Assembly (NCBI GenBank): GCA_010909165.1 | Contig: MU008160.1 | Span: forward strand, 62,001-126,000 | Direction of reading: 5' to 3' | Origin: Anthoceros angustus | Taxonomy: Eukaryota > Plantae > Anthocerotophyta | DNA: 64,000 nt | Notes under the pieces: model-generated | What the model was told of the DNA's origin: nothing | The model's input: only the letters and a program-made list of their open reading frames with translations | The model's database searches: none | In this document: positions 2,088 to 49,859 of the stretch, piece after piece | Numbering within the stretch: position 1 is the stretch's first letter | Layout of the letters: the number at the start of each line of letters is the position of its first letter | Translations under genes and position numbers: made by a program

Positions 2088-2089
2088 TT

Positions 2090-13419: not shown

Positions 13420-13745
13420 CATCCCGGGAACACGTTCACGAATCCGCTGGTGACCACGGCTCCCAGAGGATGCTTGCTGGTGTCGCCCGGCGTCTGGAGA
13501 CCCAGGAATTTGAAGTCCTCGGCTGTGGTGTCGGACTCCGGCTTGCACGCGTAGCCGTTCACATTGGGGCTGGGGTCGGTGGTGTCCAGAGCCACGCACA
13601 AGTCCTGTAGTGGGTCGGAATCGGCAGCGAAAGTGACGCCCGGGGCGCCCGACATGAAAAGCAGAGCGTGCGCTGTCATGATCATGACGAGCAGCTGGAG
13701 CTTCGTGCTTGCTGATCCGGATCGGGATCGCCTCATGTAAGCCAT
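13420..13745 (-). pseudogene. 3'-truncated germin-like protein (GLP-c, copy 1)
   Basis: Matches the 5' half of 46937-47659 up to VNVFPG, then joins sequence matching ~46063 (deletion of ~1.27 kb). Confidence 0.85.
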
Positions 13746-14344
13746 GATTTCAGCCTTCAGGACGTGCCCTGCTCAGATCAGGTCAGCTTGTGACAAGGCC
13801 AGCTCGGTGCAGTCTCGATCTGGGATGGGTGATGCTGCAGCAGTCTAGGAAGTCCTCAATGACAACAGCCTTGAGAAGCAGGATTGTCAGAAGTAGATGG
13901 AACACATCGTAGGCATGTATGGATTTATACCACCCCACAGTCCACACGGCTTACACCTTTTCACGACTGGTCGTGTTTGTGCACAGCTTTCGAGCCCAAG
14001 ATCCTCAGCAAATCCACAAGATTTGAGGAACCAATCGACTGGCTGATACTAAAAGTCTGCTCTCCGATAGTCGAGCATTTCGGTGCATACGTTGTGCATA
14101 TGAGCCGCTGCCTGATATCTCTCTATCGGCAGATAATGGTACAGGTAGCTGAGATTGGTGATGGCATTTGTCTTGAATGCACCGCCAGGATGGGCCGGCC
14201 GACTATTGCTGAAAGCCTTGGGCGAAGAGCGATTGGTACTTTGGTTGATGCTAGCACTTTCTTCTTCGCAGTGTTTTTTTGGGGCCAAGGTAACCGGTTG
14301 CATCAACAAGGAAATCACAGCCAGAAACCCGGGCTTTGGGGCTG

Positions 14345-16690: not shown

Positions 16691-17889
16691 AGGGAGCTTC
16701 GAATCCCGAGTCATCAAAACCGCTTGGTCGAGATCTCTTGTGAGGGACTTCACAAGTTCACACCACGACGTGATCACCCACAAGGTGGCTGCCAGCTGGA
16801 GCTCTGGGCTCTCCAAGCTGTTATAAGAAAAATCACCAACTGTTATAAGAAAAATTAGACGACATTCATCGAGATGACAAAATTCAAACCGTTGTAAACC
16901 TTTTCCTACCAAAAGTTCAAACCCGTATAAAAGCTATCGTTATAAAATAATAATATAAGTTATTCAAATACTACCTCTGGGACTAAACAAGGGTAGGGAT
17001 CTGCGAGTCATATCGTGAATATTTTCAATGATGGATACATTTGCCTAGTGCAGAACAACACGCCAAAACATCGAAGGCTCTTCTAAGAATTTGTAAGACA
17101 TCCACATCATAGTGAATGCAAGGGATAAATAAGCCTAGTGATGCTATGCGAGAAGCTGAGGTGTTAGCAGAAGTAGCTTGGGAAAGCAGCAAGCTGCAAC
17201 TACCAACAAGCCCCAATTTATGTGCTACCTTCAAATGCAAAGCGTTGAGTCCACAGTCTCCTATAATTGATGATGTCTAAGACATCAGCAGCCCATCAGC
17301 CCCACATCACCCTACGGCTTCATCCTTGCACCGATTCACGGTTTACCTAGTTCGGAAAAAGAAATCAGCGAGGTGTCTGGTAGCCCATACGATGCCCGGC
17401 ATCCGTCACTGCAATCGCTGGGCGTAGCGAGCTCGCCTCAAATCGGTGGAGACGTGCGGGCTGCAGACATTGCAACGCCCCGCACATCTTGCCTCATGTA
17501 GGCGGTCCTTCCCTCCCGCTCAAGCGAGCCTCTGAATAGCCATGGAAAATCAGCAGATACCTTCACCACCATCCCAAAATGCTAGACAATGCGAGCTCCT
17601 TGTAGCCCTTCCAGGCCACACCATGAGAGGAGTCCAACAAAGTACCACCCTTGCAGGCTGCTGAGGCATCGCCGTCGCATGCGATCCGCCATCTCCCTAA
17701 GCCGCCAAACCCTACCGTGCGGATGCTCCACACCCCTCCTCCAGCTCCGCCTCCACAGCCGCCGCGCCCGTGACGCGCCGATCCGGGCCTCGCACACAAG
17801 TCCAACGTCTGAGCGGATGAAAAGGAGAGCGTTTGTGATTTAAAACTTTAATAAAAACAATGAAAATTATCATGTCTTACGCAAATGAG

Positions 17890-19099: not shown

Positions 19100-20492
19100 A
19101 AGCCTTTGTCCAAGCTAGCATTTGTGCACGATGTCATTTACTTAAGTATCATTTACTACTTGTTTTACCTTGTAGAACAACCACGGCACCACCTCTATGT
19201 CTTTATTTTTTCATTGCCTTTGTCCAAGCTAGCATTTATGCACCGATGTCATTTACTTTAAGTGTCATTTACTACTTATTTTACCTTTAGAACAACCACG
19301 GCACCACCTCTATGTCTTTATTTTTTCATTACGGTATTACCTCTCTGTCCTTATTTTCTAACTATGGTGAATAAGCCCGATACCACTTCACGCCCGCAAG
19401 TGCGGCCCATCATATATGACACTTTTCAATTATAAAATAAGTACCACCTTTATGTCCTTGTTTTTGCGGCCCATCATACATGTCACTTTTCAATTATAAA
19501 ATAAGCACCACCTCTATGTCCTTGTTTTTTCACTATGGTGAATAAGCACGGCACCACCTTCACGTCTACAAGTGCGGCCCATCATACATGATACTTTTCA
19601 GTTGTAGATAAGTACCACTCCGGTTTTTTCTATTGTAGAACAAGCACGACACCACTGCACGACCTCCATTCTGTGCATATAAATATCACAATGCAATTGT
19701 CCGTGGATGGATCCTATGCACACTTGGTGATGGAAATGTCATTGATATGCCATATGTTGGCATAATGCCAAAAATTTTAAAGGTTGACTCTGGGTATCAA
19801 CACCTGGAATGTTTTGAAGGTCAAGTGGTTCAAACCAGTTTATAATGAAGATGCAAAGGATCGTCGCAAGGGCTTGAAGATAGACACATCCGGAATGCAT
19901 ATAGTGAACCCCAAATCTTTGTATTCTCTACAAGAGTCGAAGATGAACCCTTTACCCTTGTGTCACCCAAACTAGTTTAGACTTTTCTCTATGACAATCA
20001 GATGGTTGTCGGGATTGGTGCATGAGGAAAATGATTTATTTTAGAAGGAATAAGTACATTTTGTTAGTGGTTCCAGCTTTAATAGCTTGTTCATGTAACC
20101 CATAAACTCTCTTTCAATTTGATCTCTTGTAAAACAGTTTGTTTAAAACCTTAAAGTTCCTTAGTTAAGAAAAAGAAAGTGTTGTAAAAGGACGCAACAT
20201 TGCACTAGAAAACTATGTCCCACGATTTACAACGTGGTTTAGAATTGAAACTTTTTACCGATACTTGTTATAAAATGAATAATTTTACAACATCTATATT
20301 TTACAATGCAAGTTATAAGGAGAAAAAGCTCTAAAGAGTGTCACGTTGTCAAAATACCCCACATTGTAAAACATCAAACCCATGTTGTAAAGTATTAAAC
20401 CCTATATAAAATAATACATGAGCTGAAAAACCACGTTGTAAAACGAATAGACGATAAAACCCCGCCTCTAGTTTTGAAGGGGTAGTAAAGTG
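19100..20492 (+). mobile_element. CACTA-like remnant, second copy
   Basis: From 19280 matches position 1 onward; ORF 19784-19975 LKVKWFKPVYNEDAKDRRKGLKIDTSG; same subterminal repeats. Confidence 0.55.
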
Positions 20493-21699
20493 TTGAGTTT
20501 CCCAGCCATTAATGGCTGGGAGAACATGTGTATTAGCGGTGCGGACTCCCATTCATCCTCCCCTTGCACCAACGTCGGCAAGATATTCGGTCGGAGGCAA
20601 AGGGAGAAGGGTCGGGGAGGTACATCTTCCCGAAGCGGAAATGAGGAGGGGCTCCTCGTTAAAGATGACATCACAAGCAAAGAGCGAGGCAGAGTCCTTC
20701 AAGTATATCCGATGGGCCAGCGGTCTTGCCATGGCCAGGAGAATGGCTTCCTTGGACTTGAACATGGTAATTACATGAGGTTTATATACGAACCCCTTTG
20801 CGAGAACCCCTTTGGCGAAAATCACTCGGTATCTAAATCATAAAGCCATCACGGTCTCGACAATGGACCATTCTTGGCCCCTGACTAAGTCATGAACAAC
20901 ACAATTGAGGCATACACACGACAGCAGTGCGAGCGGTGCTGGCGGCGCTGGATGGCCATGATGGAAGAGGGACGTTTTAAATGTGCACTTGCAAAATGGC
21001 ACCGATAGACACATGGCATAATGAAGTTTATGTCCGAATCCTAATACATTGGATCCGGTTACTCGTGCGGGCTATTCGGGTCTCAATGGGCCACCGAGCG
21101 GAATCTAAAACTACAGCTAGGTTTCGCATACGCTCCAGTTCTTCTTCGTCAAAGCCATCATGCCTCCGACAATGGACCATTCTTGGCCCCGACTAAGTCA
21201 TGAACAACACAATTGAGGCATACACAGACGGTGGTGGTGCTGCTGGCCGCTACCGGATGAAGCCATGACAAGGAAGAGGGACGTTTTAAATGTGCACTTC
21301 GCAAAATGGCACCGATAGACACATGGCATAATGAAGTTTATGTCTGGAATCCTAATACATTGGATCCTTACGTAAGGGCTATTCGGGTCTCAACCGGGCC
21401 AACAAGGAATCTAAAACTACAGCTAGGTTTCGATACGCCCAGTCAAAACTGCCATTCTCACCCAAAGCGTTGTCATCGTTGTTAACCTCCGCTTGGACAC
21501 ATCGACGTGGGAGGTTGCCATATGGTATCCGGCGTTCTTGTCCTTCCTCCAACAATTCGCCGTCGGTCTTCATCCTCCGGCACTCAAAGAAACAACTTGG
21601 GCCTTTGAACAATCCTTTTCACTTATACAAACCTCCTTTGCCCGAATGCGAAGGGCCTGCGATGGGGCTCAAGGTAAGCTCTTCTTCAGATCCGGAGAA

Positions 21700-22380
21700 C
21701 CTCGATCCGTGGATGCGCTGGGGATGTATCCAAAGACACCGTAAGTCCGCTCGATGGCGATACGCTTTCTTCCACAGCAAGGCTAATACCAGCTACCGAG
21801 CATGCGTCCACCACCCACCTTCTTTTGAGAAGGTCTTGATCAATTTCATCATCGCCCAAGAGGCCTTTGGTATGGGCATACCACCAACTTGTCATGGGAC
21901 AAGTACACCGCTTCTTTACCATGTCATGGCCTATGACGGACCTCCCATTGTTAAAAGTGCCATGCATGGCATTCGCATCATCGGAGCTCGATCCTTTGAA
22001 CACCCATCTTTCAAGCCCCATCCGGTCACATACTCCATCGCTTTCAAATCCCCCTATCATTGCTCATGTTAGTTTTATCCCACACGAAAGACACGTGCCA
22101 CCCTTCTTACACCACTGCATCGATTCCCGTCTTGTGTGGGCTTCCTCCACTCCATGCATGACAATCATGCGGAAGTCTTCGCTTGTAGTTTTCTCATGAA
22201 AACTGTTGAAAACTGTACTCAACATAGTGGCATCCATCCGTTTGTCCATAGGCCCAATATCAAAGCCTCTGGGTACATCCATGACTAACAGGGTGTACCT
22301 CCTCACCCGAAGGTAGCCCCGCATCTCCAAAATATCTCGCTTCTCCACTTGGTAATGAACCTCCTTCTCACAGAACAAGA
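21700..22380 (-). pseudogene. Beta-class N4/N6 (amino) DNA methyltransferase domain, frameshifted
   Basis: In reading order: YTLLVMDVPRG (motif IV position, 22265-22279), WDKTN (22068-22082), CPYQRP (21861-21878), MKLIKTFSKEGG, VDACS (motif I position, ~21798-21817), GRKRIAIER (~21750-21773). Confidence 0.7.
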
Positions 22381-22999
22381 AAATGTGCAGCCCTTCATGA
22401 AGATCTCAGACCGCCATACCGCTCGTCTTCCAAACTCTTCCAATTATTGATCTCGAAATGAAATTCTTAAAGTCCTCCGGCATTTTCGCAAGTTGTCTAT
22501 ATCCTTCAATTCGCAGGGCAAAACGAGTAAGTGCATATACACAGATGCGGAAACATTATGCACTCAGTAGGAGGAGGGCCAGGCCGGCCTGGGCCTCCTC
22601 CTTGAGTTCTATGGAGTGGATCTGGATGGGCGGCCGGTGCCCAACTCGGTCCCCACATCACATGTGGAAGTGGCCTCGGCCACCGCTACCGCAAGAACGT
22701 TAGGGTTTGTAATGACATATGAGAGAATTAGAAAACGATGGGTAGTATGGCACACCTTCCCAAATAATGCCGTCTGAACCGAGCTATCATTTCGTCGAAT
22801 GCAAAGGATATTCCACCTAACCTCTTGAATGATGAGCAGCCCAAGTGTTTTACCATAGCCACTTGTATAACATGAAACTTCTTCCGTAAGGTAATCTCCT
22901 CATCCATACCTTTTAGGTCGATAATACTGTCAACACCTTCTCCCTGATGAGTATCCGTGCACTCTCCATTGGAATCCCTTGAACGATTTCCACGGCTTT

Positions 23000-24550
23000 G
23001 CTAGCATATCCTTGACTTCACGTAACATGTCAACAACCGAGCCTCCTCTTGTACCTTCCGTTTGCCTTTGCCCTTCTTACTTGTTCGCAGAACATGTTTT
23101 TCCGCCCCGCAATTCTCCACCTCCCATTTTGAAAATATTCGATCCACGTTGTCCCAAACCTTCCTCTGTTCGCAATGCATAAGATGTGGGTCCGATTGTC
23201 CACCTTATTCGCTTGTAAACATCGTCTTCCGACCTCCGTCGTCCTCAATCAAGCCCAATACACGAGATAGGTTGAATTTCCAATTCATGGTCATCTGGAC
23301 ATCATCTCGCTGGCAATAAGCTTCGTCCTCAAGTACACGCTCAATGAAGGACATCTTCTTCCTTTGTCGACATCGACAGGGTCTGCGGATCGCATTTCCG
23401 CCACCGTCACCACAAGATACACATGAGCTTCCACATATTGGAAGCGTGTTTTCCTCGAGATATATCGCCAAATGTTTCATGGCTGCAAAGGTATGGTTCC
23501 CACCAAGAACGCCCATAACATATTTCTTCGCCCGAACCTTTCCACTCCAACTTGAGGTTGTCACACTCGGGTCGATCATGCAAAGGAGAGGCAACACGCC
23601 CTCCTCAATCCTTCCCTTCGATATTACACGAGCCAAATAATTTGCCCATGCCTCGTCCACTCTCCTTATCTGCGCATCGGTGTAATATGGGATCTTTGGT
23701 TTCAAATTCTCCACTTCACTAATCTTTTCTCGAACCACCTTCTTGGAGTAAGCCGAGTCCCGAATTGTCAAAGGGTCTCGTGATCTCGATAGCATCCTCC
23801 AGCCTTTCCTCGTCTGAGAACATGTTTTTCTGCTCGCAATTCTCCAACCTCCCATTTTGAAAATATTCGATCCACGTTGTCCCAAACCTTTCCCTCCTGT
23901 TTGCAATGCATAAGATGTGGGTCCGATTGTCCACCTTATTCGCTTGTAAACATCGTCTTCCGACCTCCGTCGTCCTCAATCAAGCCCAATACACGGTATA
24001 GGTTGAATTTCCAATTCATGGTCATCTGGACATCATCTCGCTGGCAATAAGCTTCGTCCCTCAAGTACACGCTCAATGAAGGACATCTTCTTCCTTTGTC
24101 GACATCGACAGGGTCTGCGGATCGCATTTCCGCCACCGTCACCACAAGATACACATGAGCTTCCACATATTGGAAGCGTGTTTTCCTCGAGATATATCGC
24201 CAAATGTTTCATGGCTGCAAAGGTATGGTTCCCACCAAGAACGCCCATAACATATTTCTTCGCCCGAACCTTTCCACTCCAACTTGAGGTTGTCACACTC
24301 GGGTCGATCATGCAAAGGAGAGGCAACACGCCCTCCTCAATCCTTCCCTTCGATATTACACGAGCCAAATAATTTGCCCATGCCTCGTCCACTCTCCTTA
24401 TCTGCGCATCGGTGTAATATGGGATCTTTGGTTTCAAATTCTCCACTTCACTAATCTTTTCTCGAACCACCTTCTTGGAGTAAGCCGAGTCAATTCGTCA
24501 AAGGTCCGTGATCTCGATAGCATCCTCCAGCCTTTCCTCGTCTGAGAACA
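23000..24550 (-). pseudogene. ParB/Srx-like domain protein region (present twice through a ~732-bp tandem duplication)
   Basis: ORFs 24033-24470 and 23205-23906: QIRRVDEAWANYLARVI...YVMGVLGGNHTFAAMKHL...MSFIERV. GGNH resembles the ParB/Srx GxHR nucleotide-binding motif. Confidence 0.55.
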
Positions 24551-26374
24551 TGAATGGCAATGTTTTCCGGATGGTCCCCTTTCCTCCATCTCTTCGACTT
24601 CTTCCCACTACCCGCCGCCACATCGCCATCGCTTCCGTCCGGCGAGACATCCGTAGGTGCTCTCCGCTTCCCACCTCGCCCACCACACCGCCTGGCTCCT
24701 CTTCGCTCCCAGGCGCCGCCGGCCGGCGCCCGCCTCCTCCTTCTTCGCCGAGTGCGAATGGGCAGGGCGCCGGCCGGCGCCTAGTCCATCTCCCCAACGG
24801 AAATCGGACAAACGGTTTGGGTTTGGGGTCATCAGTCTTCCCCATCCGCCCAGTCGGGCCGGCCGGCGCCTGATTGTCATCCGCATCGATGCGGACGGTA
24901 GGAACAAGGTCCGCAAAGTTCATGATGTCCTCGCATCCCTATCCTCGTCTTGGTCGCCGACCTTCTCCATCTGAATGACCCAAAGACATCGGATCGGGCC
25001 ATCATCCTCGTCGGATGGTCCGATTCACTATCTCTATCACTGCTATCTCGCATCATCCTCATTCTGTGCCTCTCGCTCTCCTCATAGACAATACGCGCCT
25101 GTGTGCTACAACAGTATCCGACACCTTTCCACACAACAGTCTGATAAGAGCTCTTCCTACCTGGGGTGGCTGCGAAACAGCAAACATGATGCAAATCGAG
25201 GAGAAAGCACATCAGCAGTGACACAAACTGAACAAAACAAAATTCACAGGTCCATGGCATATCTGTGCTTACACTCGGTTGCCGCATTGCTTCTCGAAAT
25301 ACCTCGACAAGCTCAGGAGGACCACATTTCTTAGCCTGAAACCCAAGACGAGCTCATACGCCCTATACATTTGAGGGTCTTGAATCATGCGTCAAACTCC
25401 GAGGCCTTGTTGTGCAAAACAACGTGAACAAGGGTTCTTCTCGTCCATGTCCGTGGTCGCCCATACTACCCATCCAGCCCTCGCTCTTTGGTTAGGCAAT
25501 GCTCCCCTATAACCCATGATCCACAATTTCAATAGTGGAGTCCGAGCGTTCTCATCCTCGCTCGCATCTGTGTCACCATCCAATCTTTCTCAAGCGATTG
25601 AGGATCCATCCGAGCATTCGACGCCGAATGATCACAGTCTCCTCGTAGGTGAAGGCGAAGGAATGGGCACAGCGCTCGAGGCTTTTGACTTCTCCACTCA
25701 GCCCCCTCTTTCCACCGCCAGTTGCCTTCGCAGACGCCGCCAGCTGGATTTCGCTTGCCCGATGCATGCCCACCCTTGGCTTGCTCACCACCTCCAGTCG
25801 CATCACGATGGTCGCTGCCTTTCCCAAGTCCCTCGGTGCACTAGCCCCGCTACTCCGCCCGGATTTCTGGGAGGAGGTCACCGGCACCATCCGCCAAATC
25901 CTTCTTGCTCCGTCGCCTTGAGTTCGCCGCAATTGCCCAAATTGAGCTACGCGAAACAAAGTTGCATCACTCACAAATTGGGCTTGGAATGGAAATTGTG
26001 GAGTTCTCGCCGCACAGGGATGCCTTGTGCACCGCTTGACACGGAACACGCTCTTTGCAAAGGCGCACACCGTAGGTCCCTCCTTCACACACGCCACATA
26101 CCGATGATGGAGGCCTCTCACCGTGGAGGCGCCCGAGCGCTTGAACAGTGTGGAACACCGCTACTAAAGGAACTCTTAACCCTGGACGATTAGGGTTACC
26201 GCTCACCACGTTAACCAAAGTTAGAAACCCCGATGTCGTGTGAAAGGCTGGTAGTTAAGTGGACCTTATTCTCCTATGCATGTATTTATGACATCGTGAC
26301 TTATCCATCGGTTCGGCTGTTATTCTTATCCGCGTGGCATCGCGATATCCGCCGCCTCATTGGATTTCCTCGCC

Positions 26375-28870
26375 GTTATGTGCAATGAAGTCGCGTCGTG
26401 GCGTGGGTACTAAGTCGGCTCGGCAAACCACACTTACCAACCATTTCTTTGCAAGGAGTCTACCAAGGTGACTTGTCGACGACTTGACTACCAATGTTGC
26501 GCACACATGCATTTATATGGAGGACGTGAGTGGAAAGTGCACCGATCGTGTCATGTCGATTCATTTGTGCTATCACCACTGTTAACCCGGCAAATGCACA
26601 TTTGCACGCAGCATCGGCTTATGTAGAAGAACCCTCCCGATACTTGAGGCCTGCAGCGGACTCCCAGAAAAGGGCGAGGAGGCTTGCTCTTTTGAACCCT
26701 CCGCCACCTCTGCCTCGCCATCCTCCGCAAGGTTAGTGTGTTATGGGGCTTGAGTGAAGAGTCCGTTATAGCACATTGTGGGAAGTCAGTAGTGGATGTC
26801 ACTTGTGCAGGGGAAAGACGCCGACGTCGGGAATTGTCTTCGCCAAGTATGCCGCATGGTGTTCCGATGACGCCAAGAAACCTGAACTTGTATGCAGCCA
26901 TAGACGGCAGCCTCCAAATGAGGAGAGTTGGGGTTGAAGGGCGCTGATGTTCGCATGATTGCCGCCGTGGCTTGTTCATGGCGATGGGTATGGGTAGGCA
27001 AAACATACCGGTCCCGAGGAGCTAGACGGTCGTCCGATAGAGGTCCCATCGAGCGATTTACTTCCAATCACCTCCGGAGGATGATGTGCAAAGATCGTTT
27101 CACGAAACCTTTGAGCGAGACATTGCAGACGCCAAAGGACTCGTCTGCGTTATGTGCAATGAAGTCGCGTCGTGGCGTGGGTACTAAGTCGGGCTCGACG
27201 CAAACCACACTTACCAACCATTTCTTTGCAAGGAGTCTACCAGCGGACTTGTCGGCGACTTGACTACCAATGTTGCGCGCGACACACACGATATGGAGGA
27301 CGTGAGTGGAAAGTGCACCGGTGTCATGTCGATTCATTTGTGCTATCACCAGTGCATAACCCAAATGCACATTTGCACGCATCGGCTTATGTAGAAGAAC
27401 CCTCCGATACTTGAGGCTGGCGGACTCCCGAAAAGGCGAGGAGGCTTGATCTTTTGAACCCTCCGCCACCTCCGCCTCGCCATCCTCCTCCAAGGTTAGT
27501 GTGTTAAGGGGCTTGGTGAAGAGTCCGTTATAGCACATTGTAGAATCGAGTGGATGTCACTTGTGCGGGGAAAGACGCCGACGTCGGAATTGTCTTCGCC
27601 AAGTATGCCGCATGGTGTTCCGATGGCGCCAAGAAATCTTGTATGCAGCCATAGACGGCAGCCTCCAAATGAGGAGAGTTGGGGTTGAAGGGGCCTGATG
27701 TTCGCATGATTGCCGCCGTGGCTTGTTCATGGCGATGGGTATGGGTAGGCAAAACATACCGGTCCCGAGGAGCTAGGCGTCCGATAGAGGTCCCATCGAG
27801 CGACGACTTCCAATCACCTCCGGAGGATGATGTGCGAAGATCATTTCACCTGAAACCTTTGAGCGAGACATTGTAGACGTCGAAGGACTCGTCTGCATTA
27901 TGTCAGCAAAGACGGGGAGCCGGCGTGTCGTTGAGGAAGAGTGAAGTGGACATTGTATCAGCTGACTACCGAAAACCTTGTTGCAATCGATGTGCTTGCG
28001 TGTGAAAGAAAGATTTCGTGAGCGCGTATAGATTCATAAGAATGTGCATAAGAGCGAGACATTCCTTCGCCTCTAGTCCATCGCGACACACCGACGATAT
28101 GGAGGACGTGAGTGGAAAGTGCACCCGATGTCATGTCGATTCATTTGTGCTATCACCGGTGCACAAGCAAATGCACATTTGCACGCATCGGCTTATGTAG
28201 AAGAACCCTCCGATACTTGAGGCTGTGCGGACTCCCGGAAAAGGCGAGGAGGCTTGATCTTTTGAACCCTCCGCCACCTCGCCTCGCCATCCTCCGCAAG
28301 GTTAGTGTGTTAAGGGGCTTGGTGAAGAGTCCGTTATAGCACATTGTGGGAATCGAGTGGATGTCACTTGTGCGGAAAGACGCCGACGGAATTGTCTTCG
28401 CCAAGTATGCATGGTGTTCCGATGGCGCCAAGAAATCAACTTGTATGCGACCATAGGCGGCGCCCTCCGTGAGGAGAGTTGGGGTTGAAGGGCGCTGATG
28501 TTCGCATGATTGCCGTGGCTTGTTCATGGCGATGGGTATGGGTAGGCAAAACATACCGGTCCCGAGGAGCTAGGCGGTCGTCCGATAGAGGTCCCATCGA
28601 GCGACGACTTCCAATCACCTCCGGAGGATGATGTGCAAAGATCGTTTCACCGAAACCTTTGAGCGAGACATTGCGTCAAAGGACTCGTCTGCGTTATGTC
28701 AAGACGGGCAGCGTGTCGTTGAGGAAGAGTGAAGTGGACATTGTCGGTGACTAAAACCTTGTTGCAATCGGATGTGCTTGCAGTGTGAAAGAAAGATTTC
28801 GGGAGCGGTATAGATTCATAAGAATGTGCGAGACAGAGCGGGACATTCCTTCATCTCTAGTCCATCGCGA
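26375..28870. repeat. Three imperfect tandem copies (~770-900 bp) inside the transposon
   Basis: GGAGGACGTGAGTGGAAAGTGCACC recurs at ~26519, ~27295 and ~28101; the peptide WRWVWVGKTYRSRG recurs. Confidence 0.9.
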
Positions 28871-31503
28871 CCGAGGGACCAATGATAAAGGAAAAGTTGT
28901 CACTCATGTTATGGGAGTGTTCCGACACGATGTTGTCTCAAGGCTTTCAAGGGTTTATTGTGTGGGACACATCCGATGAGGAGTTGAAGGCTAGAGTTCT
29001 TCGAACTCACCGTGGATGGTTTCGAACAAACCCCATGAGCCTCGCATGCGCTAGGGGCCATAGCTTGGATGGACAAGACTTTTATGTACATGGTGAGAGG
29101 CTCCCAAATGTGGAGGTTTTCAATCTTCCCGACACGCATACAAAATTAGAAATATGGTTGCTATACAAACGAGAGTGCGAAGGTCGTGGCTCGGATATGT
29201 CACCTACGCGTGGTTCTTAAAGCTATGGAAATGCAACTACAGGTGAAGATCCCAAAGTCAAACCGGTTCTCGACATGCTCGCTCAGTGGATTGAAGACAA
29301 CTATACGGAACTCAACACGAAGGTCGATCAAGGTCGGGCACTCTTGTTCCTCCGCATGCTGTCCTTTCTAACCTTTTTGTGTGAACTACTGCGGTTTGTC
29401 GTGGCCGACCGGGTCCTAGGTGTCGGTGCCGCATCGCTTGGAGGTTTGGGCCCATCGATGGATGGAGGTTTGGTTAAGCGGTCGGCGCCCCTTATATCAC
29501 AAGAGAGTGGCGGCCGCCCCTCTTCGCTTCACGAGGGCGTCCGACCTGCGGATGGTTAGTTGCCTGCACTCCCTCCCCTCCCCGCCTCCTCCTCCTCCTC
29601 CATTGGGTGGGCCGGCCGCCCACCCAATGTCATGACTAGTGGCGCCGGCCACCGGCACCACCAGTGAGGGTGCGGCCGGCGCCCCTATGTCCTGTACAGG
29701 AAACCCTTGGGTGGAACTCCATAAGCACCTTGGCTCCCACCTACACCAAAATCCGGCCCTCATGTGAAGTATATGTGTAATGATAAATGAGAGGGCATGA
29801 CTAGAGTGTTTGCAAAGAATGGATTTTGAAACTGACTCAAGTTCTTGTTTTGTAATGAATATCAAATCGCTACTGACGACATCGTGCGCCCGCACGAGGA
29901 ACGGAAAGATGGCCAAACACAGGAGCAAAAGTTCTGAGATCCGCATAAGTACATATTACATCTATAGATGGGATGGACGAAGAAAACCGAGGTACCACAC
30001 TTTTGAGGTGGTCAAGAACTGGATGAGGAGTCCCGCATCTCCATCACGTAGTTGGGTGTATGATTCACAACTACACGTAAAACGAGGGCCTTCTTGCATT
30101 ACGCAAATTTGAGAAATGACGCCAATTTTGACTATCATCATACACGTGATGTGATACACAACTACGAGGAGTATTACCGAAGGTTTTATACTTGCAATTG
30201 GACAACACTTGTCGGAGAACAAGAATCAACTTCTTTTGCATATCCGAACATGTTAGTGGATATGGGAACTTTTGAGAAAGTAAAGGTGGGGTTTCTTCTC
30301 GTTGGACATACTCATGATCAAATTGACCAAATGTTTTCATGTTTTCAAAGAGCTTGAAACAGGGAAGCTCATACTCTCCCGCATTGGCGGCAATTTTGAA
30401 AGAGGCGTACACTCCAACACGAGGTGAAGGTATTAACGGAGGTTCGGACTTCCGCTCCTATGTTTGGCCGTTCGACAAGGGGATGGACGCCAAGCATACG
30501 AGTATGTGCGAAATTGAACAACCTGTCATTCCAAAGACAAAAAATTACAAGAGAAGAAAACTCGACCGTGGCCTTGTGATCATTAGAAGCAAACAATATT
30601 CGACATCGCCACAATGGGAAACGGAAGCGGTTTGGAGTTTTTGAAGTTTGTCCCATCCACGTAACGCCGCGACGGTGACATCCCTTCGTGCCGTGATAAG
30701 AAAGGCACATCGTCGGGGTTATCCCCAACCGAGGTGTGGCTCACTTGAAGGAGGGCCTCTCGGCTTAGACCATATGTCACCGCAGAGGAATATAAATGGT
30801 GGGAAGAATTTTGGGTGGACCAAGAGGAGATCGTTATTGTGGAGAATAATATAGGGCTCGCACTCCAAGACGCATGGAAGTGGTTTTCGCGTGAAGTTGA
30901 AGAAAACGAGGTTCTTCACGTGCACGATGAGGCGTTGCTAGAGGAGGCTTTACTCGGGGACCTTCCCCAACGGGATATGTACCTTGGTGCATATCAAACC
31001 GTGTTAGACAAGAACAAGAAAACCGGTTGAATGGTGACATTTCGGAAATAAGGAAAGACATGTTCATTGCGTCCCTGCACCACGAGCAGGCCGTTTTGGA
31101 TTGGCGGTCATTGATGTTCACTTAGATGCACGGATCCTCACTTTGTCGTTCATTGGTACATGAGCACATGCGTATGAAGGAAGGTATGTTGAAGAATTTA
31201 TAATCCGACATGAAGGGACCCAGTGTGACGAAAGGGGGAAAAAGGAGGAAAGCTAATTTGCCCAAAAACGTACAAAAGGTTTTTGTGAACAAAACGGTGA
31301 TCTTATATTATGGTTTCAACTTGAATGCTCGCAAACATTTATATGCTGTGGACAAGAAGGCGATCAAACAAAAATTAAATGAATTGCGCGGCTTCATACA
31401 GACCGCTAGCCAAAGTGGCCCAGAAGATAGTGAAGATAGTGGTGGTGATGCAGAACCTTGCGATGATGACGGCGCGAATTCAGAAGACGACTGGAGTACA
31501 TGA
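28850..31503 (+). pseudogene. Sola1-like (DUF7869-type) DDD transposase, frameshifted, with a probable intron at ~29330-29760
   Basis: FNLPDTHTKLEIWLLY, WFLKLWK, VKIPKSNRFSTC, IDGMD (~29965), LPKVLYLQLDNTCR-NKNQ (~30175-30230), FEKVKVGFLLVGHTHDQIDQMFS (30270-30340), acidic tail ending at 31503. Confidence 0.75.
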
Positions 31504-32382
31504 ACATCTGTGCCAAGGTGTTTTGTCTTATGTGGACACGATTTTTCTTCCCTTCCTCTCCATAAGTTTCAATAGATTCTCCAAATTACATTGTCCGTGG
31601 AAGGCTATTTTTCCCACCCGCACTTAACGAGAAAACCGTTGTCTTCCGCCAAGTTTTGTCATTATTATGCAGTTACAAAGACCAGCGTGGAAACCAGCCT
31701 TCCTAAGCATAGCGACAAATCCATACGACGAGACATCGACAGAAGATGGTGTTCATGTGCAAGACGCATTGCAGACGAAGCGTTAACCAAACCAGAACGT
31801 TGTTTGTATGTCCATAGGCCAGTCCTCACTGACCTGTCTCAGTGTATGACTTCTCTGCATGTTACGGTTCACCCCAGCAAGTGGGGAATACTATTTCTCT
31901 TCCGCGTGTACAATGGGGGCCACAATTACACACGGTCAAAGGGTGTCCATGGACGAGGAGTGAAGAGGGCGGTCGGCCGCTACTGTAACAAGACATTAGA
32001 ATTGTGTTTTCCGAGCAGGGCGACATTGACCCTCGACCATTGTACTAACGGCGAGAGTTGTACTTAATGGAAAAGGACCCGCGCACCATGTTTTTCGAGT
32101 TGCGGGTTTTGCTCATCGGTCTTCATCATCACCGCACAAGCGGTCGTCCCATCCGGGTCCGAAATGGAGCCAAATGGATGTATGAGGGGTTATCAAAACC
32201 CTTTGCCTCCTACATCGATACACGAAATTTGTGTGCAGCGGATGAACACCCTATTTTTCCGAGGCATTTTGGACCACACGATTCAAAACCCTAAATGGAG
32301 ACCCATTGGAAACCCTCATTGCCGAATAAAAGGCAGAAAACCCCCATGGTGCATATTAACCTCCTTACAGAATTACCATGTT

Positions 32383-35300
32383 CTTGGAATTGAGCTTCTG
32401 CCGCAAGGCCAAAGCAAGGTAGCCGCAAATACGGAGATGACTAAGGTCAGGCTTATGGGCAGTCCATGCTTCACAAGGGGTCTTCCCGTCAACAACCTTA
32501 GTGGGTGCGATTGAGAAGATAACTAGCTGTATTCAAAGCCTCAGCCCAAAAACGGTTAGAAAGAGAAGCATGGTGCAACTTAGATCGGCCCATCTCCACT
32601 TGAGTGCGGTGGCGGCGCTCAGCAACCTCGTTCTGCTCGGGGGTATAAGGCACAATAGTTTGACAGATGATCCCATATAGCTTAAGTAGGAGTGCTGCCA
32701 AAGCGGTGGAGTTGAACTCCCCCGCCATCGCTCAAGGATCTAGAGCTTGCGATCAAGTTGAATTTCCACCTCTAATTGCCAAGAGACAAAGCTGGAGAAA
32801 GTGCCGGACTTGGGCAACAAAAATATACCCAACAATGAAGCCAACTTGGTAGAGAGACCCTTGGAGAGAGGGTGTTTGCATAGGGCCTAGCAAATCGGTG
32901 TGGACTAGACCAAGGGGTGAGGTCTTCTATGGGAGCCGATGTGGAACGGCTTACACCATCGCTGCCAAAAGCACAGTGCAACAAAGAAAGGTTTTAGATA
33001 GATTTGAGAGGGACACCCAAAATGTAACCATCTTGAGCCAAAGCCTTCATCCGTTGTATCCGGCATGATCCAAACCGCCATAGATGCGCTAATGGGAGGA
33101 CACCAAGGTGAGAAGGAGGAGGTGAGTGCCCACGCCTCCCTCCCCAACCAGCCTTCCTAAGCATAGCGACAAATCCATACGACGAGACATCGGTTTGGAA
33201 CCGCCTTGTCACTTAAGTGGGGAGGCGGGTGACCCCCCCGATGGGCGGCCGGGGGCCAAATTCGCCCATGAGCCGGCGAGCCAGGTGCCCAACTTAGCAC
33301 CGTCGCGCCACCGTCTTGATTCGCCACTGCGGCGCCGGTTCGCCACCGTCGCGGTTCGCCACCGTCGCGCCGGTTTGCCACCGTCGCCGGTTTGCCACCG
33401 TCTTGATTCGCCACCGTCTTGATTCGCCACCGTCGCGGTTACCGTCGCCGGTTCGCCACCGTCGCGGTTCGCCACCGTCTTGTTGGTTTGCCACCGTCGC
33501 CGGTTATCGCCGTCGCCGGTTTGCCACCGTCGGCGTTCGCCACCGTCTTGATTCGCCACCGTCGCGGTTCGCCACCGTCGCGGTTCGCCACCGTCTTGGC
33601 GGCATGCTCACGCCACGGAGATGGGCGTCAGCCCACGCTTGCGATCAAGTTGAATTTCCACCTCTAATTGCCAAGAGACAAAGCTGGAGAAAGTGTGGGA
33701 CTTGGGCAACAAAAATATACCCAACAATGAAGCCAACTTGGTAGAGACCCTTGGAGAGGGTGTTTGCATAGGGCCTAGCAAATCGGTGTGGACTAGACCA
33801 AGGGGTGAGGTCTTCTATGGGGCCAGCGAGGCAGCTTACACACTCGCTTGCCAAAAGCACAGTGCAACAAAGAAAGGTTTTAGATAGATTTGAGAGGACA
33901 CCCAAAATGTAACCATCTTGAGCCAAAGCCTTCATCCGTTGTATCCGGCATGATCCGGCCTAAGGTGCCATAGATACGCTAATGGGAGGACACCAAGGTG
34001 AGAAGGAGGAGGTGAGTGCCACGCCTCCCCAACCAGCTCAAAGCCCGGTGGGGGCGTCGCGCCACGCAGGCGCATCGTTTGGAACCGGCCTTGTCACTTA
34101 AGTGGGGAGGCGGGTGACCCCCCCGATGGGCGGCCGGGGGCCAAATTCGCCCATGAGCCGGCGAGCCAGGTGCCCAACTTAGCACCGTCGCGCCACCGTC
34201 TTGATTCGCCACTGCGGCGCCGGTTCGCCACCGTCGCGGTTCGCCACCGTCGCGCCGGTTTGCCACCGTCGCCGGTTTGCCACCGTCTTGATTCGCCACC
34301 GTCGCGGTTACCGTCGCGGTTCGCCATCGTCGCCGGTTCGCCACCGTCGCGGTTCGCCACCGTCTTGTTGGTTTGCCACCGTCGCCGGTTATCGCCGTCG
34401 CCGGTTTGCCACCGTCGGCGTTCGCCACCGTCGCGGTTCGCCACCGTCGCGGTTCGCCACCGTCGCGGTTCGCCACCGTCTTGGCGGCATGCTCACGCCA
34501 CGGAGATGGGCGTCAGCCCACGCTTGCGATCAAGTTGAATTTCCACCTCTAATTGCCAAGAGACAAAGCTGGAGAAAGTGTGGGACTTGGGCAACAAAAA
34601 TATACCCAACAATGAAGCCAACTTGGTAGAGACCCTTGGAGAGGGTGTTTGCATAGGGCCTAGCAAATCGGTGTGGACTAGACCAAGGGGTGAGGTCTTC
34701 TATGGGGCCAGCGAGGCAGCTTACACACTCGCTTGCCAAAAGCACAGTGCAACAAAGAAAGGTTTTAGATAGATTTGAGAGGACACCCAAAATGTAACCA
34801 TCTTGAGCCAAAGCCTTCATCCGTTGTATCCGGCATGATCCGGCCTAAGGTGCCATAGATACGCTAATGGGAGGACACCAAGGTGAGAAGGAGGAGGTGA
34901 GTGCCCGCCTCCCTCCCCAACCAGCTCAAAGCCCGGTGGGGGCGTCGCGCCACGCAGGCGCATCGTTTGGAACCGGCCTTGTCACTTAAGTGGGGAGGCG
35001 GGTGACCCCCCCGATGGGCGGCCGGGGGCCAAATTCGCCCATGAGCCGGCGAGCCAGGTGCCCAACTTAGCACCGTCGCGCCACCGTCTTGATTCGCCAC
35101 TGCGGCGCCGGTTCGCCACCGTCGCGGTTCGCCACCGTCGCGCCGGTTTGCCACCGTCGCCGGTTTGCCACCGTCTTGATTCGCCACCGTCGCGGTTACC
35201 GTCGCGGTTCGCCATCGTCGCCGGTTCGCCACCGTCGCGGTTCGCCACCGTCTTGTTGGTTTGCCACCGTCGCCGGTTATCGCCGTCGCCGGTTTGCCAC

Positions 35301-37600
35301 CGTCGGCGTTCGCCACCGTCGCGGTTCGCCACCGTCGCGGTTCGCCACCGTCGCGGTTCGCCACCGTCTTGGCGGCATGCTCACGCCACGGAGATGGGCG
35401 TCGGGCCTCACGCTTGCGCGACACAAACACCAGGTGAATCCACCAAAGCCTATGAAAATGCGTTGGTCCATGCGAGGTTAAAATCACGCAAAGATTTAAT
35501 GGAGAATGTGGCGGTGCGTCGACTCAATTGATCCTCGAACGATCCATGCTCGAGTATATCGGGGATAATTGCGGAAGACTTGGATCTTGACTTGGTGGCT
35601 CCCTTCTCCTCCACGCATAAGAGGTATCTCACCCCACGATTCACCTCCCCTACGGATGGACCTCCAAAGACTTGACTCGACTAGGGAGCGGACCCTTAGC
35701 AGGAAGGCACTTGAGAACCTTGAACAAACTCGGACTTCTAATAGGCAGGCTACCGGTGTGGCCACATCTAGTCTTGGTTTTGCATTCTACCTCAGAAATA
35801 TTGGAGCCTACCACACTCGCTTTGTCGGGCCACAAACAGCCAAATGAAAGAAGGCCGTTGATGATGAGTTTCCGTCATTGCAAGATAACAAGATATGGCA
35901 TCTCTGCGATTTGCCACCGTCGCGGTTCGCCACCGTCGGCGGCAAGTGGACTTTCAAGATCAAGTTACATTGACACCATTGACCATTACAAGGCAAGATT
36001 TGTGCCACAAGGTTACACTCAACACGCAGGGGACGACTATGATGCAGACAATCATTTCTCCCATATCGTCCAGACTTGTTCACTACGTGTTGTTCTTGCT
36101 TGTGCTACTTTTCATGATTGGGAGGTGGTACAGCTTGATGTCAAGACAGCATTTCTATATGGGAAGGTGCAAGAGGAGATATACATGCGTCAACCCGAAG
36201 GTTATGAGGAAAAAGAAAGTGAAAATCTCGTGTGTTTTTTGCGGTAGCATTTATGGCCTCAAGCAATCACTCATAATAGGAATGTCTCGTGGGCGACTTC
36301 CTCTTGCAATTGGCATGTGGATTCTCCAAGTGCCCATCCGACTCGTAATGTACGTTCTCGGTGGGGATGCTCTTGTTATCCTCACCTTATACATGGATGA
36401 TCCCATATAGCCGGCGTGAGTGCCAAAAGCGGTGGAGTTGAACTCCCCCGCCATCGCTCCGAAGGATCTAGAGCTTGCGATCAGTTGAATTTCCACCTCT
36501 AATTGCCAAGAGACAAAGCTGGAGAAAGTGTGGACTTGGGCAACAAAAATATACCCAACAATGAAGCCAACTTGGTAGAGACCCTTGGAGAGAGGGTGTT
36601 TGCATAGGGCCTAGCAAATCGGTGTGGACTAGACCAAGGGGTGAGGTCTTCTATGGGAGCCAGGAGGGCCACACTCTCTTGCCAAAAGCACAGTGCAACA
36701 AAAAAAGGTTTTAGATAGATTTGAGAGGGACACCCAAAATGTAACCATCTTGAGCCAAAGCCTTCATCCGTTGTATCCGGCATGATCCGGCCTAAGGTGC
36801 CATAGATGCGCTAATGGGAGGACACCAAGGTGAGAAGGAGGAGGTGAGTGCCCGCCTCCCTCCCCAACCAGCTCAAAGCCCGGTGGGGGCGTCGCGCCAC
36901 CGTCTTGGTTGGAACCGCCTTGTCACTTAAGTGGGGAGGCGGGTGACCCCCGATGGAAGCCCGGGGGCCATTCGCCTTGAGCCGGCGAGCCAGGTGCCCA
37001 ACTTAGCACCGTCGCGGTTCGCCACCGTCGATTCGCCACTGCGGCGCCGGTTTGCCACCGTCTTGATTCGCCACCGTCTTGATTCGCCACCGTCTTGATT
37101 CGCCACCGTCGCGGTTATACCGTCGATTCGCCACCGTGCGCCGGTTCGCCACCGTGCGCCGGTTCGCCATCGTGCGCCGGTTTGCCACCGTCGCGGTTCG
37201 CCACCGTCTTGGTTTGCCACCGTCGCGGTTCGCCACCGTCTTGATTCGCCACTGCGGCGCCGGTTTGCCACCGTCGCGGGCATGGCGGCGTCTGGCGGCA
37301 TGCTCCACGCCCTGGAGATGGGCGTCAGGCCTCCACGCTTGCGCGACACACAAACACCAGCGAATCCACCAAAAGCCTATGAAAAATGCGTTGGTCCGGC
37401 TGCGAGGTTAAAATCACTTGGTGCGGCAGCATTTAATGGAGAATGTGGCGGTGCGTCTGACTCCAATTGATCCTCGAACGATCCATGCTCGAGTATATCG
37501 GGGGATAATTGCGGAAGACTTGGATCTTGACTTCGGTGGCTCCCTTCTCCTCCCTGCATAAGAGGTATCTCACCCCCCTGATTCACCTCCCCCTACAGAT
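32383..37600 (-). mobile_element. Copia integrase and pre-integrase remnants in four tandem partial copies, interleaved with a GC-rich minisatellite and one truncated + strand RT (35800-36400)
   Basis: ORF 32498-32728 GIICQTIVPYTPEQNEVAERRHRT..FWAEALNTASYLLNR; ~885-bp periodicity (33645/34530); ORF 35672-36247 QLDVKTAFLYGKVQEEIYMRQPEG. Confidence 0.88.
33300..37280. repeat. Four blocks of a ~16-bp GC-rich minisatellite (CGCCACCGTCGCGGTT and variants)
   Basis: Blocks at ~33300-33597, 34185-34482, 35072-35370 and 37008-37278. Degenerate versions at ~3260-3400 and ~4500-4600. Confidence 0.9.
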
Positions 37601-39069
37601 GGACCTCCAAAGACTTGCACTCGACTAGAGTGGACCCTTAGCGAGGAAGGCACTTGAGAACCTTGAACAAACTCGGCGGACTTCTAATAGGCAGGCTACC
37701 GGTGTGGCCACATCTAGTCTGTTTTGCATTCTACCTTAGAAATATTGGAGCCTACCACACTCGCATTGCTTTTGCGGGCCACAAACAGCCAAATGAAAGG
37801 CCGTTGATGATGAGTTTCCGTCATTGCAAGATAACAAGATATGGCATCTCTGCGATTTGCCACCGGCGTCCGATCGGCAAGTGGACTTTCAAGATCAAGT
37901 ACGACCGAGCACCATTGACCATTACAAGGCAAGATTTGTGCCACAAGGTTACACTCAACACGCGAGGGCGACTATGATGCGAGACAATCATTTCTCCCAT
38001 ATCGTCCGGACTTGTTCACTACGTGTTGTTCTTGCTTGCTACTTTTCATGATTGGGAGGTGGCGACATGTCAAGACATTTCTATATGGGAAGGTGCAAGA
38101 GGAGATATACATGCGTCAACCCGAAGGTTATGAGGAAAAAGAAAGTGAAAATCTCGTGTGTTTGCTGCGCAGGCATTTATGGCCTCAAGCAATCGTGAAT
38201 AGGAGCGTCTCGTGGGCGACTTCCTCTTGCAATTGGCATGTGGATTCTCCAAGTGCCCATCCGATGATAATGTGTCGTTCTCGGTGGGGATGCTCTTGTT
38301 ATCCTCACCTTATACATGGATGAGTGAATCCTTGCTAGCCATGATGAGCAAGGGTTGCTCGCTAAGACCATCATCATGCTCAAGTCTAAATTCAGCATGG
38401 TTGACTTGGGTAATATTCATTATTGCATTGGGATGAAGGTCACTCGTGACCGCGCACTTAGAACCTTGCATCTCACTCAAATGCAGTATATTAAGGACAC
38501 ACTAACTCGCTTCAATATGCTACAATGCAAACCAGCACCTACCCCGCTCGCCGTCGGGCACCTTGTCCTCGACGGTCCAAGACCGATCTGGGCAAGTACA
38601 TGGAGGCCATCCCATCAAGAAGCGGTTAGGCGCATTAATTAGATTTGCACCATTATCCGTCACGATATCGGGCATGCGGTTCGTGTACTTGCTCAGCATT
38701 GGCAAACCTATGACCGTACATTGGTCCCTTAAGCACACTTTGCGCTACCTTAAGAGGACTATGGCGTATGGACTCAAATACCATGGATCTCATGTCGAAA
38801 TGCAACTCCAGCCTCCTTCCCTCAACTTTCAGCCTATATCGGCGTGGATTGGGGAGGCGTGGACTCCAAGAAATCCACATCAAGATATGTTGGCCATGCG
38901 CATGAGGATGTTGAAGATAGCCCTCCACTAATCGACAAGGTTCATAACCTCTGGACGACATTCCCAAAGAAGATTGGTTTTGTGCACAATGCGCTACATG
39001 AGGTGCGTACGTGTGTAGTCCTATTAATGATAATGTTTTGACTAAGAGTCTCGCATTATCAGAGGGGGA
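37600..39069 (+). mobile_element. Ty1/copia RT/RNase H remnant (copy 2) ending at a putative polypurine tract
   Basis: IGKWTFKIKY, KARFVPQGYTQ, EEIYMRQPEGYEE, KSKFSMVDLGNIHYCIGMKVTRDR..FNMLQCKPAPTP; AGAGGGGGA at 39061-39069 shortly before a TG. Confidence 0.88.
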
Positions 39070-41974
39070 TTGGTTTGCACCTATAGTTGCATATTAGATT
39101 TGTTTTGCTTGGTCGTCTGTTCAGGAAGTGCTTATATGAATGCAAGTGCTTACACTAATCTTTGCACTTGGGTTTAGTACCTGATTAGCATTAATTAATC
39201 CAATTACTTATCTTTAAGTAATCGATTTATTAATCTAAAATATTTATGTTTATTAAGCATTGATTAGTGTTAATTAAACATGGTTAGCAATAACTAAGTG
39301 GATATGCACAAATAATATGCTTTAGCATATTCCTTCTATTACAATGTATTCTTAGGATATTTCCGGCGTATCGATGCGATAGGATATCAAGAATATCACC
39401 GTCTGGTATTTGATATATATGAACCATTTCAGGAGGACAAGCTCGTTCATAACTTGTCTTCTAGATATGGAGTACAAGAGTGTTGTGAGGAGGCCAAAGC
39501 TATGACTCAGGAGGGATGTGTGAGGAATTTGCATGTTGTTCTCGTGCGGAGAGTGTGTTTGTGCCATGACGTGCAAGGCACTCCTTCTATTATTGGTTTG
39601 CACCTATATTTGCATATTAAATTTGTTTTGCTTGGTTGTCTGTTGAGGAAGTGCTCATATGAAAGCAAGTGCTTACTTCGTGTGATATTACTTTCATAGT
39701 GTAAATGATAATGCTAAATGTTTATAGGATGATCTTTATGGTCATTTTCTTGTTTGGGGTATATTTATTGGGATTCCGAGCTAGTCTTGATCAAGAAGCT
39801 AATACAAGCCATGAAGGGCGTCTGAGCCAGAGACCCATGGCCATCTCGCGCTCTCAGGTGTTAGAACAGGCATGTAGCGGATCAAAGCGAGCAGGGAACC
39901 AAGTAGCAGGTACCTCTTCCGTGAATAAGAAAATTAAATAGTTATAGCCATATTCTTAGAAAAATAGACTATATGCTCAGTAAATAGATTATTTATAGAT
40001 AAATTAAATAGTATTCTTAATAAATAGGACAAATACAGTAAAATAAGATAAGTCTGTAGAAATGAACGGGTAACACCCAACCAACCTACCCACTAAAATT
40101 GAATGGCCAAACGCCTAACCAACCCAAATACCTAACCAACCCAAACACGATAAGAAACAAACACATCTGACCTTCTTGGCTTGGACCAAGAGGCGCATAC
40201 GTGATAGAGAAGTAAAGCGAGGTCCAATTCCTATGCTACAAAATTAAACGCCTTGAGCAAAGACAATTTCAAATTTTTCCTAGTTCAAAAATCAGCAGTT
40301 ACTCAGCGAACATTTTTCGATGATGATCATTTTCTTTGTTCATACATATTGCTTTACTATTCTTTTAAAACCTAACGTACTTGTAGACTACCGAACCCCG
40401 AGCAATGATTCAGCGTTAATTAATCAAAATTAGTAGAAATTAAAAATCCAGAAATTATTATACTTAAAATACTGAATATGTAAAAATTTATGAGTTTAAG
40501 ATGCCGAAAACAAGGAAACTAGGGTTTGTGTGAAAAATTAGGGCCTGTTTAGGGGAGGTCTATACATATCCATTAGTTCTATATACGTAGATACCTATGT
40601 ATTTTAATAAATTTTGAAATTTGATTAAATTATTTTTCACAAATATTAAAATTTTCAAAAATATGAATATTTATGTTTAATCTTATTTTTTTCAAAAAAT
40701 AAATATTTGGCGATATCCTGTTGAACCATCCCTCGGGGTATGATACTAGGATTGGTATTTTTTTCCTCTCTTGTAGAAAGTAGCTGTGGTACTACTTGAC
40801 AAAAGCTAGATGGGTTACCACGAAGATCTGGGCGGTTGAAGATGAGATTGTATGGAAGGAAGGGTTGAACTATGGAAAGCACATTCATATGTGTCTTGCA
40901 TCAAACTCCAGTGACGGATCAGGACCTATTGATCAAAATATTTGTAATCAATCATTTGTCTAGTCCAATGCAAACTTGATTATTTCTATACCCACTTGGT
41001 CATGTATCTTTGGAGATAAGGACGAAAGTACCGGAGCTAAGACAATGTACATTTATGATCCACCCAAAGTTTAGGTGGATTCTTTTCTTTTTAAGTTAAC
41101 TCTAGAATGACGAGGGCTTTCCGCCATGTTTTTGCTCAAATATTAATTGTATTTTTGGAGGGCATGTTAATTTTTTAATTTTTCTACTAATATTATAATT
41201 ACGAGCGATGTCATTGGCTTCAAAATGTACTCACAAATATGAGGCAGATAAGTGCCCGGTTCTAAGTAACCCTACATGAACTCATCTATCGGAATCTCGA
41301 GGCATAGGTTGGATTTTGAGGTATTTATTTTAAAATTGTTTTTTAAAACATGATATCGAAGGACCATGTGATCGGAATATATGCTCAAGGTCTGTAAGTT
41401 CAAAATATAAGTGAACATAAATGTATGGAGTGATATGTATCAAAGGCTCGTTTTGAGTAGATTAATATTCTGGATTAAAATGAAATATATTAACATATTT
41501 AATAAAATTATTATTTCGTGGATCTCGTCTTCTTGAGCCTTAATTGAGACGTTGTAGTTTCCTTTGTGGAGTCGTCAGGTCAATCAACTCTAACAGCTGT
41601 CATTGTTAGAGTCGATCGAGTAAGAAAGCTACCAGGTTCCGAAGAGAGCGCGATAGGGATCTTTTGTAGAAGATCCTCAAACGACGTACCCAATCCAAGA
41701 GGTGTGAACGGACACCACGAATCGTGAGGAGAGAATGAAAGAAAGAAAGAAATTAGAATTACAGGAGCAGAAAGATGCTAACAAAACGGCCTGATGCTAC
41801 TTATCAGCAGCTGCCCAGAGTGTGTGCGCAAGACATGACGGCAGCCAGCTGAAGCCTGCACTGTAGAGTGTAGAGGACATCTATTCCTATGACCTATCAA
41901 TGTGGGTAGAGGATATCTATGAGCATGACTTATCATCGTGGGTAGAGATATCATCTACATATTCCAAAGACTTA

Positions 41975-49820: not shown

Positions 49821-49859
49821 AGGGAGCGTCGAATCCCGAGTCATCAAAACAGACTACTA

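Follow-up and report, generated by a model that had tools for sequence, protein, structure and literature searches.

Sola1 is a superfamily of DNA transposons (Bao et al. 2009, via PMC3845634, PMC9033089 and the supplement of PMC12477816) with Sola1-1_PPa of the moss Physcomitrella as one example, a host for which Sola1 is also listed in a review. A preference for AWWT/AWDT target sites has been presented as a Sola1 hallmark (PMC3845634). In the brown alga Ectocarpus, Sola1-1_Ec32, classified as "Sola-1", measures 21,549 bp, has AACCG...CGGTT termini and makes a 4-bp duplication for which no more than a bias "towards ending in A" is given; in BLASTP it matched Repbase Sola1-1_PPa best, and its transposase holds ...MMDGANQSNFVVP... 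and ...VQVDNTVAENKNNYLMGILAAMVGRGIMRTVTLCFMMVGHTHIQIDQIFSCF... (PMC12477816 supplement). On the strand opposite the transposase, the same element encodes a protein of 1104 amino acids (aa) with a ParB-like and an N4C/N6A methyltransferase part (PMC12477816). ParB-fused DNA amino-methyltransferases have also been described in algae and chytrid fungi (Iyer et al., PMC4738411), and ParB-methylase loci are known in phages and plasmids. Here, we analyzed a window of 64,000 nucleotides from Anthoceros angustus (assembly GCA_010909165.1, contig MU008160.1, positions 62,001 to 126,000 of the forward strand; all coordinates below are those of the window), in which an 11.6-kb element (20761-32382) is inserted in one copy of a duplicated region. 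Taken as a whole, the locus is very probably best explained as a Sola1-superfamily cut-and-paste DNA transposon with exactly defined ends. The element is of a published type; new here are the host record and the member itself.

The ends of the element were defined by comparing a filled and an empty copy of the same site. Self-BLAST of the window revealed collinear duplicates (1-16720 vs. 19281-49850), in which segments 1-2371, 2368-3369 and 4620-16720 match 19281-20760, 32383-33399 and 37277-49850, respectively, with the insertion in the second copy only. At the left junction, ...GGACTTG is followed by AACATGGTAATT (in the longer read, CCTTGGACTTG meets AACATGGTAATTACATG), and at the right junction AATTACCATGTT is followed by CTTGGAATTG (in the longer read, ...GAATTACCATGTT meets CTTGGAATTGAG). 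At the corresponding place in the other duplicate (2358-2385), the sequence is ...CCTTGGACTTGGAATTGAG, and the 28-mer across this empty site occurs once in the window. If 20761-32382 and one of the two CTTG copies are taken out of the filled copy, exactly the uninterrupted paralogous site is restored, and the joined flanks are identical to it over ~40 bp on the left side of the junction and ~170 bp on its right side.

The borders set in this way coincide with a perfect 12-bp inverted repeat, the 12-mer being confined in the whole window to the two ends of the element, in plus orientation at the left and minus orientation at the right (Table 1). The chance of such a repeat lying exactly on the borders is ~4^-12; since the empty site fixes the borders independently of the perfect repeat that lies exactly on them, chance is not a serious explanation. 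An earlier interpretation of this DNA, made from its letters alone and referred to here as the sequence-only reading, had described perfect 12-bp terminal inverted repeats, CTTG on both flanks and ends definable from an uninterrupted site at ~2365-2377 in the other duplicate, and all of these were found as described. It had also extended the repeats imperfectly to ~30 bp, a likeness that proved loose: beyond position 12, ~11/17 positions match, with a 3-nt gap.

The plus-strand gene of the element encodes a transposase of the Sola1 type. Its motifs IDGMD (29964), QLDN (30195), NKN (30218, in another frame) and FLLVGHTHDQIDQ (~30292-30330) are spread over different reading frames, and the piece 30064-30354 matched Pfam DUF7869, a family of which no mention was found in the literature searched, with 51 bits (E 1.8e-13; cut-off, 26 bits). 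A word search returned 13 homologous DUF7869 fragments. Our own frameshift-aware alignment of these fragments to the DNA gave the reading KYI.TSIDGMD.KKTEVPH ... LPKVLYLQLDNTC.ENKNQLL.AYPNMLVDMGTFEKVKVGFLLVGHTHDQIDQMFSCF, which is 55% identical to one relative (P0002) over 154 columns spanning all three catalytic motifs. When the core LQLDNTC.ENKNQLL.AYPNMLVDMGTFEKVKVGFLLVGHTHDQIDQMFSCF was compared with the Sola1-1_Ec32 transposase by eye, from the supplement text and with no alignment tool, the two ran ungapped over a stretch of 52 residues that begins at the second catalytic D and ends with SCF; of the 50 positions that could be compared, 26 were identical. The Pfam match, together with core motifs and spacing as in the curated Sola1-1_Ec32 transposase, bears out the earlier proposals that the element is a Sola1-like transposon with terminal inverted repeats and that its motifs resemble Sola1/DUF7869. 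In the mechanism we envisage, this transposase, of the DDE type (Pfam DUF7869), would bring about excision of the element after recognition of its 12-bp terminal inverted repeats; insertion would proceed via a staggered 4-bp cut, the repair of which would yield the CTTG duplication.

Long open stretches were also present on the minus strand (25353 to 21689), pointing away from the transposase gene, as the sequence-only reading had stated. The piece 24036-24497 (154 aa, minus strand) holds ...LLCMIDPSVTTSSWSGKVRAKKYVMGVLGGNHTFAAMKHL..., which resembles the ParB/Srx core, together with the motif GGNHTFAAMKHL. Further along, the stretch from 22405 to 21689 reads LLVMDVPRGF, VWDKTN (in a shifted frame), ERWVFKG and VVDACSVAGIS, with motifs in the order IV to I, as in β-class amino-methyltransferases. 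From these motif traces and the published Sola1 precedent, a ParB/methyltransferase identity of the second gene in this copy is probable, and the gene would most likely be a decayed or mis-assembled ParB-like/N4C-N6A DNA-methyltransferase accessory gene. Its designation as "cargo" in the sequence-only reading was abandoned: in view of the published precedent (PMC12477816), it looks like a regular accessory gene of the Sola1 lineage rather than captured cargo.

The ParB/methyltransferase identity, which the sequence-only reading had likewise put forward, was not confirmed by profile, sequence or structure searches. Scans of the minus-strand pieces against NCBIfam and PHROGs gave no ParB or methyltransferase match, and the sole marginal profile match was to KorB_C (E 0.058). 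A PDB sequence search with three minus-strand pieces returned nothing meaningful, an exhaustive HMMER search of 1.84 billion representatives found 0 matches to the 154-aa ParB-like piece, a word search with the 125-aa methyltransferase-like piece gave no match, and tblastn of minus-strand pieces against plasmids retrieved nothing relevant. An AlphaFold2 single-sequence model of the ParB-like piece was unusable, with a predicted local distance difference test (pLDDT) value of 46. By Atlas protein-language-model features, which offer a lead and not a test, the 154-aa piece scored 0.93-0.94 with DUF3723 (163-180 shared features), 0.90 with ParB_N and 0.89 with DUF6551; the methyltransferase-like piece remained below recognition level. 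The frame breaks in this gene may hide a domain.

Among named clusters, those of fungal DUF3723 proteins came closest to the ParB-like piece (24036-24497, minus strand) in the same language-model features. The giant Starship transposons carry DUF3723 as a conserved auxiliary gene (PMC9156397), and the likeness, which has no alignment support, hints at a link between the accessory genes of unrelated giant transposons.

Several observations weigh against interpreting the locus as a Sola1 element with this gene pair. Firstly, the uninterrupted transposase frame expected of an autonomous element is not present as assembled. Secondly, the duplicated CTTG misfits the AWWT hallmark (PMC3845634), a single site being unable to define a preference, and a single copy was examined, the one that the window holds. 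In the methyltransferase-like part, motif IV reads DVPRG instead of DPPY and motif I reads CSVAG instead of FxGSG, substitutions that make catalysis by this part doubtful in this copy. Finally, Pfam scans of ten minus-strand pieces, and then of all 43 stop-to-stop pieces of at least 30 aa in the three minus frames, gave no ParB or methyltransferase match.

The alternative that survives best is that this copy is genuinely dead and non-autonomous, frameshifted when it moved or soon after, and mobilised in trans by an intact relative, a scenario to which we assign somewhat less than an even chance. The reading of the transposase requires at least ten frameshifts and two stops within 440 bp of the catalytic core (~1 frameshift per 44 bp), the ParB-like exon is tandem-duplicated and the methyltransferase motifs are degenerate, all of which favor a dead copy. 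This is in contrast with the high conservation of residues within each frame piece, with VGFLLVGHTHDQIDQMFS being identical in relatives from other organisms, and with the pattern of differences between repeats. In natural divergence, indels are normally far fewer than substitutions. In every repeat pair of the window (e.g., 4620-11613 vs. 37277-44359, and within 26374-28871), however, gap openings, mostly single-base, equaled or outnumbered substitutions, at a density that was very uneven along the blocks. Over 7.2 kb of the block pair, 189 gap openings, of which 131 were single-base, were counted vs. 129 mismatches (71 transitions to 58 transversions). For the internal 780-bp array, the corresponding figures for gap openings and mismatches were 29/26, 29/25 and 25/21; the left subterminal repeat gave 17/16 and the ParB duplication 9/5. 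Consensus indel errors in the assembly are therefore suspected, with a per-copy density similar to that of the frameshifts in the transposase gene. Given this noise, the block identity of 94-97% overstates the age of the blocks.

The nature of the two blocks also bears on how the insertion is dated. The assembly might have placed two haplotypes, or noisy read sets, next to each other as the two blocks, in which case the filled and empty sites would be alleles of a heterozygous insertion. The blocks lie just ~2.5 kb apart, in tandem, and their identity varies greatly, from near 100% at 8.5-11.6 kb to ~90% with dense single-base indels elsewhere, as such an arrangement would allow. Still, the numbers of tandem units differ between the blocks, substitutions are present besides indels, and tandem clusters of germin-like genes, which the duplicated block of at least 17 kb contains (Cupin_1), are common in plants. 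Overall, we regard the haplotype scenario as unlikely. Whether the blocks are paralogs or haplotypes, an active transposase of this family existed after they diverged. The further claim in the sequence-only reading that the family was "recently active" is overstated, as it rests on a paralog divergence inflated by indel noise.

Regarding the integration geometry, the sequence-only reading had cautioned that the ends could also be taken as a 13-bp inverted repeat (G...C) with a 2-bp TT duplication. This is arithmetically valid, as the letters can be parsed as GGAC(TT)GAACATGG...CCATGTTC(TT)GGAATTG, and it would imply a geometry unlike that of Sola1. We consider it very unlikely to represent the true ends: insertions of Sola1 elements, also of the one that shares this gene pair, are flanked by 4-bp duplications (PMC3845634), and the AAC...GTT termini of Sola1-1_Ec32 are those obtained here with the 4-bp parse. 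On both counts, the 4-bp target duplication is supported, in line with the earlier proposal that CTTG, which borders the element on either side and occurs singly at the empty site, is a 4-bp target-site duplication as in other Sola elements.

With a 4-bp duplication, the empty site consists of an exact single CTTG, which argues that this block copy never held the element and that the insertion postdates the duplication. This is the simplest reading, it agrees with that first proposed from the sequence, and it is most probably correct. The converse, an element older than the duplication and later lost from the first copy by precise excision or gene conversion, is a logical alternative with no direct support and is very unlikely, as excision by DDE cut-and-paste transposition usually leaves behind the duplication with a few bases gained or lost, whereas the empty site bears no footprint and matches the joined flanks perfectly over the surrounding 210 bp.

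Table 1. Coordinates of the element, its parts and the corresponding empty site in the 64-kb window.
Feature	Position	Strand	Basis or remark
Unoccupied paralogous site, single CTTG	2368-2371		Within GGACTTGGAATTG at 2365-2377
Left target-site duplication copy, CTTG	20757-20760		Empty site has a single CTTG
Left terminal inverted repeat, AACATGGTAATT	20761-20772	+	Perfect 12-bp inverse of 32371-32382; starts where empty-site homology ends
Subterminal direct repeat, ~300 bp, two copies, 87% identity	20842-21443		Self-comparison
Methyltransferase-like remnant (motif-level resemblance)	21689-22405	-	Three-frame reading
ParB/Srx-like region KYVMGVLGGNHTFAAMKHL in a 732-bp tandem-duplicated unit (units 97.7% identical)	23089-24552	-	Self-comparison
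Upstream open stretches of the putative accessory gene, no recognisable domain	24501-25353	-	Open reading frame and profile scans
Tandem array between the divergent genes, three units of ~750-806 bp, ~90% identical	26374-28871		Self-comparison
Transposase gene region; DUF7869/Sola1 catalytic core at ~29906-30620	28882-31503	+	Core interrupted in the assembly by at least 10 frameshifts and 2 stops
Right terminal inverted repeat	32371-32382	-	Junction read and 12-mer search
Right target-site duplication copy, CTTG	32383-32386		Junction read

Besides the features that define the element, AAACCC(T)-type motifs were observed near both ends (20790-20825 and 32300-32330), in direct orientation on the plus strand; of these, AACCCTAAA near the right end resembles the plant telomere unit, possibly by chance. 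The internal tandem array, of ~2.5 kb, separates the transposase gene (plus strand) from the second gene (minus strand). It occupies the place where a shared promoter region would be expected, and no coding signal was found in 26374-28871.

In the host region, the minus-strand reading at the insertion site is ...KPDLSHLRICGYLALALRQKLNSKSKEAILLGYGKTVKAYRIYL..., which we take to be the C-terminal part of a Ty1/copia integrase. The element would have inserted into integrase-coding sequence of a copia-like retroelement remnant, within one copy of the block. Germin-like (Cupin_1) genes form a cluster at 9200-16700, 42000-50500 and 60100-61000, with tandem and inverted copies. Among them is an apparently intact open reading frame of 240 aa on the minus strand (46940-47659), with PPHHHARATE at the place of the germin box, usually HTHPRATE; its closest relatives were angiosperm germin-like proteins, with at most 48% identity, and an exact look-up of the protein retrieved no record, which suggests a green-plant host other than a well-annotated angiosperm.

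Outside the window, a metagenome scan for the termini AACATGGTAATTNNNTNAGG retrieved 119 loci, 0 of which showed further similarity to the element, so that they are regarded as chance matches. Two loci from the Joint Genome Institute (JGI) metagenome 3300072920, L001 (1-19724) and L002 (1-12829), were examined and rejected, as they represent a distant DUF7869 element of another eukaryote that is alignable in the catalytic core only. They are two copies, ~80% alike, from an AT-rich eukaryote; their transposase carries a long acidic DEDFPPSEDFQGT repeat at its N-terminus, and a copia-like element adjoins it in L001. An upstream minus-strand gene contains KYYVIGGNYSTKVRREL, which is similar to GGNHTFAAMKHL of the element described here. 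The gene that lies upstream of the transposase in L001 and the ParB-like region showed short collinear matches, the strongest being GQVWDLIDEIFTLWE vs. GKVWDNVDRIFSKWE; this chain was marginal, since 3/142 controls scored as high.

The filled and empty pair provides base-exact ends, an inverted repeat and a 4-bp duplication for a plant Sola1 family, which can be used to find and delimit other copies in the genome. It also extends the published pairing of Sola1 with a ParB-methyltransferase gene from a brown alga towards a green plant, the accessory gene being putative here, and bears on whether such genes are ancestral to the Sola1 lineage. A bolder version, which we hold to be rather improbable, takes the frameshifts as assembly errors and the locus as a young, possibly mobile Sola1 element of a non-angiosperm green plant, with a conserved partner gene for a ParB-like DNA-binding part fused with a methyltransferase-derived one whose catalytic motifs are altered. 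If true, a transposon-encoded system by which the element marks or binds its own DNA would be common to brown algae and the green lineage, and perhaps non-catalytic here. More generally, the window-wide excess of indels is a warning for pseudogene calls anywhere on this assembly.

Compared with the ParB-fused amino-methyltransferases (PMC4738411), the second gene has the same proposed architecture, with an N-terminal ParB-like part and a C-terminal part in the β-class motif order (IV before I). It differs from them in having no statistically supported similarity and in the replacement of DPPY by DVPRG and of FxGSG by CSVAG. With the Sola1 superfamily, which is already recorded in a moss, the element has in common its DDE transposase, its terminal inverted repeats and the length of its target duplication, 4 bp; the AWWT/AWDT target preference reported for Sola1 is not seen at this single site.

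With respect to Sola1-1_Ec32, the element is smaller (11.6 vs. 21.5 kb), has inverted repeats of 12 bp (perhaps ~30 bp, imperfect) vs. 282 bp (imperfect), and resides in a green plant rather than a brown alga. Its CTTG does not end in A, unlike the bias of Sola1-1_Ec32, and its accessory gene is unrecognised by profiles and has degenerate catalytic motifs, in contrast with the ParB-like and N4C/N6A methyltransferase gene of the algal element. Both elements nevertheless have the motifs DGMD, QLDN..ENKN and VGHTHxQIDQxFSCF at the same spacing, make a 4-bp duplication, start with AAC and end with GTT, exceed 10 kb and have a second gene, encoded on the other strand than the transposase, a gene that in the Anthoceros element, as far as its motif traces allow comparison, fits the published pattern.

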